From Magallana gigas (lineage: Eukaryota): DNA of 64,000 bases. The position numbers and the translations under genes are program-made. The notes under the pieces were generated by a model. That model was not told the DNA's origin and did not search any database. It worked only from the letters and a program-made list of their open reading frames with translations. Shown piece by piece: positions 52,740 to 57,783 of this stretch. Positions within the stretch are counted from its first letter, which is position 1; every line of letters starts with the position of its first letter. The DNA lies in contig NC_088859.1 of the NCBI RefSeq assembly GCF_963853765.1, forward strand, positions 38,688,001 through 38,752,000, read 5' to 3'.

Positions 52740-52951
52740 TCAAACTGTAATGTGATCACCCAAAAAGTTGAGTGGTTTACAACAGAGATGATTATGGTCC
52801 TGACTGTATCGCTCCAAAAACAGTATCACAACTAAACACGTGACCGGAATGAAACAAACACCCGCCAAATCATGTGACCAGCCTGTTTTCCCGCCATCCG
52901 TCTTGCTCGCCTGGTGGGAAATTATAATCAGTACAACGGTGAGGGCTATAA
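52740..52951 (-). CDS. Claudin-like gene, alternative terminal exon 3c (TM3-ECL2-TM4-tail; predicted 200-aa isoform)
   Basis: Long polypyrimidine tract and CAG acceptor, phase 1. Encodes (V)IALTVVLIIISHQASKTDGGKTGWSHDLAGVCFIPVTCLVVILFLERYSQDHNHLCCKPLNFLGDHITV*; homologous to exon 3a. Confidence 0.75.
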
Positions 52952-53916
52952 CTGGAAAATGAAAAAAGAAAAAGAAATATTGGCGGAGACAAGAAAAAGA
53001 ACATCGAAAATGATATTCTACTTGTCTTTTTACATGCAAGATATTTATCTAAAATTTGAATCCTAATTATTCTGTATTTCAGATATAATTCAAGTTGTTT
53101 TTATCAAAAACATATTTGACATTATTTGTCAATTTTTTCTTCCATTTGATCGAAGAATACACAGATAGACAAATATTAAGTAGGTACTATGGTAAGTGCT
53201 TTTAGCGTGCATGAATAAATAAACTAGTAAATAACTTGTGCAAATCTATGTGTTCAAATAAAAATCTTTGCTTTAGAAGTACATTTACATTTATTACCAT
53301 CTATGTCATTTGACTTGATCATGCAGGTCTGTAGCTCTACGGAAAAAAATGGGTTGACTTACCTTAGAGCTACAGTGCCACACATACAATAGATTTCCTA
53401 TTTGCGGCGAACAAGAAGTTGTGCCAGATTTGGACTGATTTACTCTATAATTTAACCCAGTTAACGCATTCTCTCCAAATAATTAATACCCTCTCCCAAA
53501 AAATAAAATCTTCAGACATTTACTAGTAACTACAGATATTGTCACTTTACTTGCATTAGACTTTTTCTTGAACACGAATGCCAAGTTAAATTCACTGCTG
53601 GTTGAGAGTCGCCATTTCTACTTAAAAACAAACTACACTGCTTCACTTTACGGGGATAATAAGTGATGTAGGCAAGTGATGTGATGATATTAGTAGTAGA
53701 ATGTCTAAGGAATTTTTTTAAAGAATGTATTAGGAAACAAGTCCAAATCTTGCGCAAGTTTATCTTAGTGTTGTGTATTTTATGTAATCGTATATGTATA
53801 TATAAAAAATGAAAATTCGTTTTGCGAAACATTTTTTATTGTAAAATTCTAAATGACAAAACGATGATGGTTTATGGATTTATATAGAAATATAAAATAT
53901 TATCGTTGTCCTATAT

Positions 53917-54463
53917 AAAAAGAGGCCCACATGGCCTTGAAGGTCACCTGAGTACCATAGCCCATAGATTGACAGGTCAGAGAGTCTCAAGGACATAAAA
54001 GCCTCGCCCTTGGGCCTGAACCCCTGACACAGGAGCCATTAATTTCGCAATTTGGGTAAATGACTTCATGGAAATCGGAATCATGCATTTATATAGTTTT
54101 TCTCAACTATATATGGGAGTAAAGAAAGTTTTTCTAAAATTTTATGCATACTATAGAGCCAAATAGCCCTAAAGCCTGAACCCTTACCCAGGGGCCATGA
54201 ATATAAACATTTTGGTCGTGAGCTACATGGACATCATTACCATGCAATTTTTTTCCCGACATGTGTGGGAGTTTTAAAGATATTGCCTTTTTGCATATTT
54301 TGCCCCACCCATGAGGCCCCGAGGGTGATGGTGTATTACATTTCACAATGATATTTCTTGTAGTTTTCATGTAAAATTGTTATCGAGCGACGCACAGCGC
54401 ACGATGGACGACGCACGACGACCAATTGTAATAAGTCACCTGAGTGACTTAAGTGACTTAAAA
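53917..54463 (-). mobile_element. Helentron-associated HINE (minus strand) between claudin exons 3b and 3c
   Basis: Minus-strand 5' end TTTTAAGTCACTTAAGTCACTCAGGTGACTTA, a GTCGT/GTCC microsatellite, and a 3' end CTCAGGTGACC...GGCCATGTGGGCCTCT. Confidence 0.7.
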
Positions 54464-54740
54464 ACTGGTTAAATAATATTTCATCATGCAGAATAACATT
54501 CTTTCTACCTAGTAAAAAATCTTGGCAATTATTTATCACTTAGGTTTATCTTTCATACATAATTATCATAATATCATGTTTTTGGTAAAATAAAATTCTG
54601 AGAAAAAAAACGCCTCTCTAAATCATTGAATAGAACAAACTACATTTAGGCTACGTTTTTCTGTGTTTTACTTTGTAGCTAACTGATAGTGCTGTATATA
54701 TGAAATACTAGGATAGAGAAATGGAAGTTAATTTTTAAAG

Positions 54741-54928
54741 TTACTCTCCGATATATAAACACGACTGCTTGTGATTTCGGTAGTACAATTCAAGGTAAAC
54801 CAATGCCACTACACATGTACACGGAATAATGTTAACCCCCGCCAAATCAAAGGACCACCCGAGCCGTCCGCCCTCCAGTTTAGCAGCTTCTGTCGATATC
54901 ATGGCAAGCACTAGGGCCGTGAAAAGGA
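54741..54928 (-). CDS. Claudin-like gene, alternative terminal exon 3b (predicted 192-aa isoform)
   Basis: Acceptor CCCTTCCCGTATTCTTGTTGCAG, phase 1. Encodes (V)LFTALVLAMISTEAAKLEGGRLGWSFDLAGVNIIPCTCVVALVYLELYYRNHKQSCLYIGE*. Confidence 0.75.
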
Positions 54929-56356
54929 CTGCAACAAGAATACGGGAAGGGCGATAAAGTTCTGACAAAACCGCAAAAAATTAAGAATATTTTACTCATA
55001 ATTACGACTATTACCCAGGCCCAACATGCTTAAACTATTCCAGATACATCTGTGTATTATCAATAACTGTTGTTACAAAATTGTATTCTTAGAATTGTAG
55101 AACAAAACTTTAAAAAAATATGATCTGTTGATAAGCAGAACTTTGCTCTTCGGTCCAGCATATGATTTTAGTCATAAATTTAAAAAATGTGGAAACCTGT
55201 CTTAAGATTTCAAAAGTGGTGTTTGTTTTCTTCAAATTATATGCGATTTTGGTTTGACTGTAGCAAAAGATTTCCAATTGCTGAGTCGCCAATTTCCAAT
55301 TTTTGATGCTATAATTCATGTACCAGTAGATCGAGTCAAGTAAAAGTGCGCAAATGTTGCAATATCTCAGATCAAAGAAATAAACACCAATAGAATTAAA
55401 GTACTGACACTACTTAAGGGAGTTGATTTTTGAAGGAGTATTGTTTGATCAATGTCTGAACATTGCAGATTCAGTGTTATTAGTTTATCTGAAAGGGAAA
55501 TATCTGGAGAAGTCTCATAAGATTTTACCCTCTACTTTAACCTGTTGCTCTTTAAGCAAGAAAAAACCCGTAAAAATACGAGCAACTGACGACTTATTTA
55601 ACTAGTAAGGAGGCTAAATGGTCGACAAGTTACCTAATGGATCAAGCTGGAAATTTTAAAATAATTATGATAGTTTTGTCCGTTAATTATTATTTAGTAG
55701 AAAAAATTAAAATCTTTTAGCTTTAAATTTGAAATATTTTCGTATATCTTTATACACCGAAGATCGAGAAAGTCTTAAAATAGCCAAAAAACCATCCAGC
55801 CCATCTATTTAAATAGTCTGCCGAAATGAAAATTGTCTTCCACACAGAAATATTTAGGTAACACCCCCTTTAATATAAACTTATATTTATCAATGATTAA
55901 CTTGGCCTGTAGACAAAAAATTCTATTTGATGTATGTGTCACTACTCCTCCTGAGTCAATACCTTTTAAAGGATTACTTGTATCTAAGCGCTGATTACCT
56001 TTATGTAAGTTTCATAGGCTGCAGTTAACAGAAGCAATTCTCATTATTTTCTCAAAGAACTTATTTATATTACGGATTCATTTATTTACCGAGTGCACGT
56101 TCACTCCACTTTTGGTGCAAACGAGTGATTTCAAAGAGGAATTAATTGCAAATCTACTCCCAAAAATAACAACGAGTTTTTCTCTGTGAAATTTGAACCT
56201 TTATTGTTAAAATCTAACATTGCAAGCATATATCTTATCAAAAGGTTCATAAATGTCCGTCTAATGGTTCCGTGATATCTGAGTAAATGTTACTAGATAA
56301 TGAAATGACAGGTGATTTACTATATGTGTGTGTAAGAAATAATGTGGTTGCCATGA

Positions 56357-57783
56357 TCAGACCTCCCATTCCAGATGCCCTCTCTTTGAGGACCCTGGCT
56401 CCTCAGTGTATTTAACTACATCAGTTGACACAGTGTCTATTGACAAATTGTCAGGAACATACGGTATATTTAAACTTCCGGTCGAGGAACGGTAAGAGAA
56501 AGACAAGTCGTCCCTGGGATGTGGATCGGGCCAAAAGTTCACCATGGCAGGATCCAAATTGTGGGGTTTTGAATCATGAACACTAGATTTGGTCTCATTT
56601 TCTGTATTGGGAGTTTTCTTTTGGTCGTGTTTATTTTTTCGCTCCAAGAATATTGCAACACCAACCGCAACTTCTGACAAAATACATAAAAAGGTCAGTC
56701 CAAATGACCAGCCTATGCTTCCACCTGGGAGTTGGTTAGCTTCCGGTGCTGTTACAAGAAAATTAAGCAGCAAGAGAAACACTGCAAGTAAAATAATTTT
56801 GATAAAGAGAGTCACTTAAAAAAGAATGCATTCTATGTAGATTTGCATTCGATAACTTGTGAATAAAACCTATGATTACTTATATTGTTTGCGAGTGCGA
56901 AAAAAAATATTAAACAACCTTTTTTCTGAATATATACATCGACAAATTGTACAGAAGCCAGTGGTGCCAGATGAGGAAATATGAATATCTGAATGTGCTA
57001 CATAATTTCTTACGGCGGCCAAAAAAAAACCTGTTTCGTCTACCTCCACCTTTATACTTTTTTCTTCGTTACTAATCACATCTTGAATACAGTTCAGCCA
57101 TCCTATTCAATTAATTTTACATTTCATTTTCCACCTGACACCAACATGTGTCTATTAATTTCTTTCTGCTTGAGATGGAATGAAAAACAAAGCTTCCAAT
57201 AAAACGATTCATGTTACCTATTACAGCAGAAAATCCTAAGACAGCACCGGCGAGTTTCTGTCGGTACTTCTCGACTTCATTGATACACAGGTATCCTATG
57301 AGAGCGAACTCTTGTAGAAAAATGGCAATTAGAGAACACGTCATGAGGATCCGGGCCCCATGATACCAATCACTGCCTCCTCCTGTTAAAACAGATCCTG
57401 TAGTGTTTATAAAAGGTAACAGATGTTCTATTACTATACCAAAAAGTTTGTTAGATGCAATTCATGTACAATTTCTATTAAGAATGTAAATCAAATATGT
57501 GTGTACATGTGTAAAGGAATCAACCTTTAATGCATGCAAAGCTTTCTCCCAGCTCACCATTTTGAAAATGTTTGTCATCAAATATTGAGCTAGAACATTT
57601 GGATTCCCCGCTTGTCGATGACCAACATCCGGTCCACAATCCCATATTGATGACTTTTCCGTCCAACTGGAGGTACCACCAATGGTTTGAGCAGAAACAG
57701 ATGATGAAGAAGAGTAAGCTGACGCCATAGCATCCGAAAGCCCCAAAAGACAGGTAGGACTGGCGGAGACGAAGCTTGTACAT
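56357..57783 (-). CDS. Claudin/PMP22/EMP-family tetraspan protein, exons 1, 2 and 3a (271-aa isoform)
   Basis: ATG at 57783 (GCCATG). Exons 57783-57558, 57382-57218, 56781-56357, all phase 1. Signature W...GLW..C...C (NHWW...NMGLWTGCWSSTSGESKC), four hydrophobic segments, GWSFGL before TM4, ends HLEWEV*. AATAAA about 150 nt downstream (56205-56200). Confidence 0.88.

Follow-up and report, generated by a model that had tools for sequence, protein, structure and literature searches.

Three tandem, homologous alternative last exons in a tetraspan gene of the Pacific oyster

The stretch of DNA analysed here is a 64-kb window (64,000 nucleotides) of the Pacific oyster genome (Magallana gigas, C. 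gigas in the records cited below; contig NC_088859.1, forward-strand positions 38,688,001 to 38,752,000). Its minus strand carries a gene in which constant upstream exons are followed by three homologous terminal exons, termed 3a, 3b and 3c (Table 1; all coordinates are window positions). A previous analysis of the letters, referred to below as the sequence-only reading, had proposed that this one locus makes three isoforms with a constant front and a swappable last exon. We consider it very likely that the locus is the gene LOC105347437, that a single promoter drives it, that its product is a tetraspan protein of the PMP22/claudin/TARP superfamily, and that the 3′ part of the gene is a three-way alternative-last-exon array.

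Exon 1 encodes the first transmembrane helix (TM1) and the first extracellular loop (ECL1) with its GLW-x-x-C...C motif, and exon 2 encodes the end of ECL1, TM2, the cytoplasmic loop and the first half of TM3, which gives 131 constant residues. All three isoforms share the single donor of exon 2. Each terminal exon is in frame with this phase-1 donor, has its own stop and is preceded by a polypyrimidine tract and CAG (12, 16 and 19 pyrimidines among the 20 nt scored for 3a, 3b and 3c, respectively). The exon coordinates of the sequence-only reading were all correct when the minus strand was read again, as were its intact phase-1 acceptors, open frames and separate stops. Exon 3a encodes the second half of TM3, ECL2, TM4 and a cytoplasmic tail of ~95 aa ending in EWEV. 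Past the junction codon, 3b contributes 61 aa with a short tail, one juxtamembrane Cys and the end IGE, and 3c contributes 69 aa with a juxtamembrane CC and the end ITV. The products are a 271-aa 3a form with a long, conserved tail ending in E-W-E/D-V and two short forms of 192 aa (3b) and 200 aa (3c). According to hydropathy and a structural model, the exon 2/3 boundary splits TM3; of the unit thought to be swapped, ECL2, TM4 and the tail stand, but TM3 belongs to it only with its second half.

Table 1. Features of the locus and splice joints found in RNA (a slash marks the exon-intron boundary; UTR, untranslated region; CDS, coding sequence)
Feature	Position	Strand	Remarks
5′ UTR exon, non-coding, 3′ part	58082..58155	-	donor G/GT after 58082; start further upstream
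Exon 1	57558..57785	-	acceptor 57785, ATG 57783, donor AATG/GTGAGC after 57558, phase 1
Exon 2	57218..57382	-	165 nt; donor ATAG/GTAACA after 57218
Terminal exon 3a	55901..56781	-	CDS 56781-56357; 3′ UTR ~450 nt
Terminal exon 3b	53850..54928	-	CDS 54928-54741; 3′ UTR ~900 nt; 3′ end approximate
Terminal exon 3c	52428..52951	-	CDS 52951-52740; 3′ UTR continues past 52428 in sequenced animals
Joint exon 2 to 3a	57218>56781	-	depth X1/X2/X11 = 28/203/90
Joint exon 2 to 3b	57218>54928	-	depth X1/X2/X11 = 8.6/73/32
Joint exon 2 to 3c	57218>52951	-	depth X1/X2/X11 = 22/81/43
Insertion-like stretch in 3c 3′ UTR	51794..52427	.	634 bp, missing from RNA contigs of three runs

The single-copy state of exons 1 and 2, on which the sequence-only reading relied, was confirmed by tblastn and by scanning six-frame fragments of the window with a profile hidden Markov model (HMM) that represents the constant half in 14 mollusc relatives. 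Past one exon 1 and one exon 2, the HMM found nothing better than E 0.79 in the 64 kb, and a relaxed tblastn search of the whole window gave only chance matches for further copies (best E 0.16-0.63). The best exon-1 match in that search, at 16.7 kb (E 0.63), lies within a methylthioribose-kinase gene and was discarded as chance.

A profile HMM of exon 3 found exactly three copies in the 64 kb (E 1e-21 to 1e-22) and no fourth copy in any of the six frames. Scored against the window, the encoded peptides are 50% (3b-3c, E 1e-15), 31% (3a-3c, E 1e-5) and 41% (3a-3b, E 1e-4) identical, and nine columns are invariant (A14, G19, G20, G23, W24, S25, L28, L45 and E46), which include the GG-x-x-GWS and LE motifs reported earlier as conserved. 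Because similarity at the DNA level is confined to the coding parts (72% over 53 nt for 3b versus 3c), with dissimilar flanks, the duplication is old and not an assembly artefact. We are highly confident that the three terminal exons arose by tandem exon duplication.

RNA was examined over positions 52250-58200, using contigs of the runs X1, X2 and X11, which come from three studies, and raw poly(A) reads of the run X19. The three junctions expected between exon 2 and the terminal exons were all present in each of the three contig runs, as CT..AC on the plus strand and thus GT..AG on the minus strand. By depth, the rough shares of the joints were about half for 3a, 15-20% for 3b and 23-37% for 3c. 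The joint between exons 1 and 2 (57558>57382) occurred in 4/4 runs; an acceptor at 57397, which would lengthen exon 2 by 15 nt in frame, was unused in every run and was rejected as an alternative. Because cover falls to 0-5 at ~54995-55900, between the 3a 3′ UTR and 3b, compared to 9-200 on the exons, the libraries are RNA and not DNA. The stranded reads of X19 have their first mates on the plus strand over the gene, which fits minus-strand RNA. A complete open reading frame of exon 1, exon 2 and 3c is found on single assembled Logan contigs (P0052, 200 aa on a 926-nt contig, and P0051). With three joints and no second exon 1 or 2, the proposal that one locus gives three isoforms with a constant front is supported.

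The sequence-only reading had further expected each terminal exon to have its own 3′ end, and this was only partly upheld. After 3a, contig cover continues to ~55901 and then drops to 0-5, with AATAAA at 56205 and 56086 and ATTAAA at 55874. For 3b, an AATAAA is located at 53840, the contigs of X1 and X11 break at ~53857 and 53842, respectively, and positions 53842-54040 contain the sole poly(A) raw reads found between these two exons. Transcription in X2 nevertheless reads through, with cover persisting at about half depth from 3b into 3c, and some 3b transcripts may end at the poly(A) site of 3c.

The isoforms themselves are not new to databases, as they are already in RefSeq and UniProt for the C. 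gigas gene and for C. virginica. The protein P0034 (192 aa; XP_019930563/XP_034310939, LOC105347437 isoform X3) corresponds to exon 1, exon 2 and 3b, and P0032 (200 aa; LOC105347437 isoform X2) to exon 1, exon 2 and 3c; both differ from the window by a few allelic residues. For the C. virginica orthologue, RefSeq lists 3a (278 aa), 3b (192 aa) and 3c (201 aa) isoforms among the entries LOC111121479 and LOC111118062 (isoforms X1-X5). These RefSeq models represent the same gene and its orthologue, with matching 192-aa and 200-aa products, but they are automatic 'uncharacterized protein' entries without a record of last-exon homology or array conservation. A literature search over 8 million papers, which included the locus names, found no paper describing these isoforms. 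What is added here is the recognition of the last exons as tandem homologues, the selected array across oysters, a four-exon counterpart in a clam, and a fold nearer to TARP/gamma subunits than to claudins.

For comparison we read the loci of Saccostrea cucullata (L001), C. virginica (L002), Sinanodonta (L003), Mya arenaria (L004), Haliotis (L005), Pinctada (L006) and Solemya (L007). The C. virginica and S. cucullata loci each contain one exon 1 and one exon 2, followed by 3a, 3b and 3c in the same order as in the Pacific oyster. All three oysters keep the polypyrimidine-AG acceptors, phase 1 and open frames of 140/147/142 codons (3a), 61/61/62 codons (3b) and 69/70/67 codons (3c). Because each copy is closest to its positional counterpart in the other oysters, the triplication predates the Crassostrea-Saccostrea split.

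Ratios of non-synonymous to synonymous substitution rates (dN/dS, Nei-Gojobori, three oysters) were 0.21-0.25 for 3a, 0.19-0.30 for 3b and 0.19-0.22 for 3c, values that are rough because dS is saturated (>1). Exons 1 and 2 gave ~0.05-0.11 by the same method, and exon 2, at ~0.05, is 96% identical in amino acids to its Saccostrea counterpart. Since the 60-70-codon frames and acceptors are intact in three lineages at saturated dS, their survival without selection is not expected, and the comparison argues that the array is kept by purifying selection across the three oyster species. Two earlier suggestions thereby hold: the divergent but unbroken copies do look selected, with dN/dS of ~0.2-0.3 and no broken frame in the two other oysters, and the array order is conserved in other bivalves, namely these two oysters. 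Among oysters, the PRDDLS-SYRSS block and the E-W-E/D-V end of the 3a tail, the CC past TM4 in 3c and the single Cys past TM4 in 3b are conserved, and only 3a keeps its extreme C-terminus. The 11 variants listed in the coding sequence are too few for a selection test based on single-nucleotide polymorphisms.

A similar array occurs in a clam. In Mya arenaria, one exon 1 and one exon 2 are followed by four tandem exon-3 copies at 13613, 14149, 15090 and 18782 of the locus, and these are represented by RefSeq isoforms X2 and X3 and by two GenBank models. Of these models, MAR_037135 (P0054, 364 aa; L004 10001-19261) strings three of the alternative last exons together in a single protein and MAR_037134 (P0058) consists of the constant exons and the first exon-3 copy; together they look like a mis-annotated four-way alternative-last-exon gene. 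Dreissena and Ruditapes have 'isoform' entries with differing exon-3 types. In a 55-column exon-3 tree, Mya-ii grouped with Dreissena X4 (100/99), Mya-iii with Dreissena X2 and Ruditapes X2 (90/87), and oyster 3b with 3c (81/86), the tree being otherwise mostly unresolved. At least two heterodont exon types predate the Mya-Dreissena split. The oyster exons had no tblastn match in the Mya locus, and the oyster and heterodont arrays may have either a single origin or independent ones. The four-exon clam array suggests that the design is recurrent or ancient in bivalves. Haliotis and Pinctada each have a single exon 3 within the sequence read, none was seen within the 10 kb read for Solemya, and Sinanodonta has one exon 3 plus an orphan copy upstream. 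This orphan (Sinanodonta woodiana, L003 1499-1867; HMM E 5e-12) is an open frame resembling exon 3 and is annotated as a gene of 157 aa. It lies on the strand of the family member, 8 kb before that gene's exon 1, and probably belongs, as last exon, to a paralogue further upstream and outside the sequence read.

Several points weigh against reading the locus as a functional three-way array. X1 is recorded as RNA, but X2 and X11 were taken as RNA by guess. The exon-2 side of each joint comprises only 27-29 letters and comes from de Bruijn contigs; so short a side is expected where a k=31 graph branches three ways. In the runs examined, no single read or contig spans exon 1 to 3b, and X19, the single raw-read run, is too thin for the 3a, 3b and 3c joints and has no reads on the 3b coding part. 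To these are added the cover running from 3b into 3c in X2, the roughness of the dN/dS values and, for function, the reliance on relatives with ~15-20% identity.

Exons 3b and 3c could instead be duplication relics that are spliced as low-level noise, with 3a as the only functional last exon, an explanation we regard as improbable. It would agree with the Saccostrea RefSeq annotation, which has only the 3a form, with the 3a joint being deepest in all three runs, with the C-terminal ends of 3b and 3c that differ between oyster genera, and with the lack of poly(A) reads on the 3b coding part. Noise is, however, difficult to reconcile with 3b and 3c together making up ~43-52% of the three joints by depth in each run. 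Both exons also keep the acceptor, the phase and a 61-70-codon frame in three species, with dN/dS of 0.19-0.30, no worse than 3a, and RNA-based annotation includes the two exons in two Crassostrea species.

Still less probable is that the exons are not strictly alternative, so that part of 3a is used as an internal exon joined to 3b or 3c in longer composites. Two isoforms of C. virginica LOC111121479 (X3 and X2; P0031, 215 aa, and P0033, 224 aa) are of this kind, as they contain the first 23 residues of 3a, via an internal donor, followed by the whole of 3b or 3c. In the four C. gigas runs, by contrast, no joint from inside 3a to 3b or 3c is listed, no donor motif of strong consensus occurs between 56781 and 55900, and the codon at the site that matches the inferred C. 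virginica donor is GGC and not GGT. A composite protein would also carry an extra half-helix, unfit for a four-helix fold. Finally, that 3b and 3c are last exons of separate neighbour genes with missed first exons, the shared joint being a paralogue artefact of short overlaps, is hardly credible: exon-2 sides shorter than 30 letters, such as those seen here, can stem from repeats, but there is exactly one exon 1 and one exon 2 in the 64 kb, as in the loci of C. virginica, Saccostrea and Mya, P0052 and P0051 encode the whole exon 1, exon 2 and 3c protein on single contigs, and the joints fall exactly on the predicted GT..AG sites in three runs.

The three-way array thus remains the reading that we follow, and we characterized the encoded protein by profile and structure comparison. 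PF00822 (PMP22_Claudin) scored 33.0 bits for P0034 and 32.5 bits for P0032, above the cut-off of 26.7, with residues 21-165 aligned to profile positions 16-152 of 161, the variable exon included; exon 1 alone reached 22.7 bits (E 1e-4), below the cut-off. Among 18 mollusc relatives, G48, L49, W50, G52, C53 and C63 of the ECL1 motif W...GLW..C...C are invariant and W35 is nearly so. An AlphaFold2 model of the 3b isoform, based on an 18-sequence alignment (pLDDT 84, pTM 0.76), predicts helices at 10-31, 81-108, 110-147 and 155-188, forming a four-helix bundle in which ECL1 contributes four strands and ECL2 a strand element.

Compared to the PDB by Foldseek, the model gave 124 matches with E<1e-3, led by TARP gamma-2, other TARPs and the gamma-1 subunit of Cav1.1, with TM-scores of 0.6-0.77 for the top matches. 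The probability was 1.0 for TARPs, CACNG1 and claudin-15 and -3; the top 17 matches were TARP or CACNG1 chains, with claudin-3 at rank 18 and claudin-15 at rank 21. A sequence-profile search of the PDB matched, weakly, only LIM2 (MP20, E 0.003) and CACNG1 (E 0.008), and PF15108 (TMEM37/CACNG-like) matched the C. virginica orthologue alone, with 23.5 bits, below its cut-off of 31.7. Among 1.8 billion representative proteins, a HMMER search with exon 1 found just 21 matches at E<1e-3; the family is narrow. All named matches are molluscan, and a Haliotis relative is named 'CACNG1-like' by NCBI. Classical claudins end in a C-terminal PDZ ligand, -YV, which is absent from the tails EWEV (3a), IGE (3b) and ITV (3c). 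Profile scores and the predicted fold both indicate a claudin-superfamily member that is not a classical claudin and is nearer to TARP/CACNG/MP20, so that the earlier label 'claudin-like' applies at the superfamily level but not in the narrower sense.

Further features were observed at both ends of the gene. The joint that connects the 5′ UTR exon to exon 1 is 57785>58082 (CT..AC on the plus strand, short side of 74 letters) in X2 and 57790>58082 in X1 and in one X19 raw read. The main ATG lies two bases past the acceptor at 57785, and splicing of 58082-58084 to 57785 creates an out-of-frame ATG five bases before it. This upstream ATG starts a frame that extends well into exon 1 (cf. the 'MASAYSS...' products P0041-P0043 from unspliced contigs), and it may dampen translation of the main frame. 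Upstream of the gene, chance tblastn matches spaced by 164-166 bases (60803, 60969, 61135, 61301 and 61465), within ~60803-61476, suggest a tandem repeat of ~166 bp.

In the 3′ UTR of 3c, the insertion-like stretch (Table 1) is flanked by TA-rich sequence and contains a near-perfect palindromic, high-copy repeat resembling a miniature inverted-repeat transposable element at ~52290-52420. The loose contig end at 52428 is identical in X1, X2 and X11, and the first 15 of the 30 listed loose letters recur exactly at 51765. Depth over 52250-52448 is 126-440 in the contig runs, and X19 reads lie there on both strands. Because the ends of the stretch are not GT/AG and it contains the palindromic element, an intron at 52428 was rejected, and we interpret the stretch as inserted DNA, probably a polymorphic transposon copy carried by the reference animal.

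With regard to mechanism, the shared 5′ UTR exon, exon 1 and exon 2 are joined through the phase-1 donor to one of the three acceptors. Each last exon then supplies the second half of TM3, a short ECL2 with G-x-x-GWS, TM4 with LE, the tail, a stop and downstream poly(A) signals. Proximal splicing and cleavage at 3a would compete with read-through to the distal 3b and 3c. The pyrimidine tract is weakest at the proximal 3a and strongest at the distal acceptors, and weak proximal with strong distal acceptors is the usual layout when proximal splicing or polyadenylation competes with read-through. Exon choice is probably regulated by cell type.

We also considered docking/selector RNA pairing, as reported for PGRP-LC (PMC9013439). 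An arm at 56787-56806, on the 3a acceptor, has two AT-rich 17-nt inverted matches (82% complementary), at 54980-54996 and 53100-53116, upstream of the 3b and 3c acceptors. In a crude scan of the three oysters, duplex energies between the pre-3a intron and the regions upstream of 3b and 3c were no better than those of shuffles (z -1.1 to +1.4). Because the energies are indistinguishable from shuffled controls, such pairing is not supported as the mechanism.

The swap of the second half of TM3, ECL2, TM4 and the tail may change the membrane or scaffold partner of the protein, as we infer from the roles of TM3/TM4, ECL2 and tails in TARPs and claudins. TARPs contact receptors through the face made by TM3 and TM4 and bind PDZ scaffolds with the tail, and the ECL2 of claudins contributes to trans contacts. 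By this analogy, the cassette might be an old, selected bivalve way to obtain several auxiliary or adhesion subunits, in which the constant half retains one function and the swapped face and tail redirect it to channel, receptor or scaffold partners by cell type, a proposal that we make only tentatively and consider less probable than its opposite. The claudin/TARP/PMP22 superfamily has usually been diversified by gene duplication, and, if the proposal is true, the oyster gene would be the first member of the claudin/TARP superfamily to diversify partner specificity by alternative last exons instead. The locus provides a natural domain-swap experiment on which half of a claudin-fold protein sets partner choice and a clean test locus for alternative-last-exon regulation in molluscs. 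Its weight is limited, as the isoforms are already in automatic annotation and the functional reading is drawn from analogy.

Taken together, the locus is a real, expressed and selected three-way alternative-last-exon gene whose design has precedents and introduces no new principle. Among its structural relatives, TARP/CACNG gamma proteins (stargazin, CACNG1) and MP20 (LIM2) share the GLW-x-x-C motif in ECL1 and the four-helix bundle with an extracellular sheet, but sequence identity is just 15-20% and the oyster tails lack the TTPV end of TARPs. In vertebrates, claudin-10 (a/b) and claudin-18 (18.1/18.2) use alternative first exons via alternative promoters and thereby swap TM1-ECL1. To our knowledge, alternative splicing in the claudin superfamily swaps the first exon (CLDN10, CLDN18). 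These genes likewise exchange one homologous exon that codes for transmembrane and extracellular-loop parts, whereas the oyster gene keeps TM1-ECL1 and swaps the second half of TM3, ECL2, TM4 and the tail. Splice variants of CLDN18 are the subject of PMC13650739.

The constant-plus-variable cassette design, which the sequence-only reading had put forward, is present in the oyster gene but already known elsewhere: in Drosophila pip and PGRP-LC, constant 5′ exons are joined to one of several tandem homologous last exons or 3′ variable regions (PMC9013439). In PGRP-LC, exon choice is reported to depend on competing RNA structures (PMC9013439). The oyster locus has the same arrangement, with tandem homologous exons past single-copy constant exons, each a variant of one module, and with one donor joined to each copy in RNA. 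It differs in that pip encodes a sulfotransferase and PGRP-LC a peptidoglycan receptor, both of which swap a soluble domain, whereas the oyster array consists of three copies and swaps transmembrane helices.

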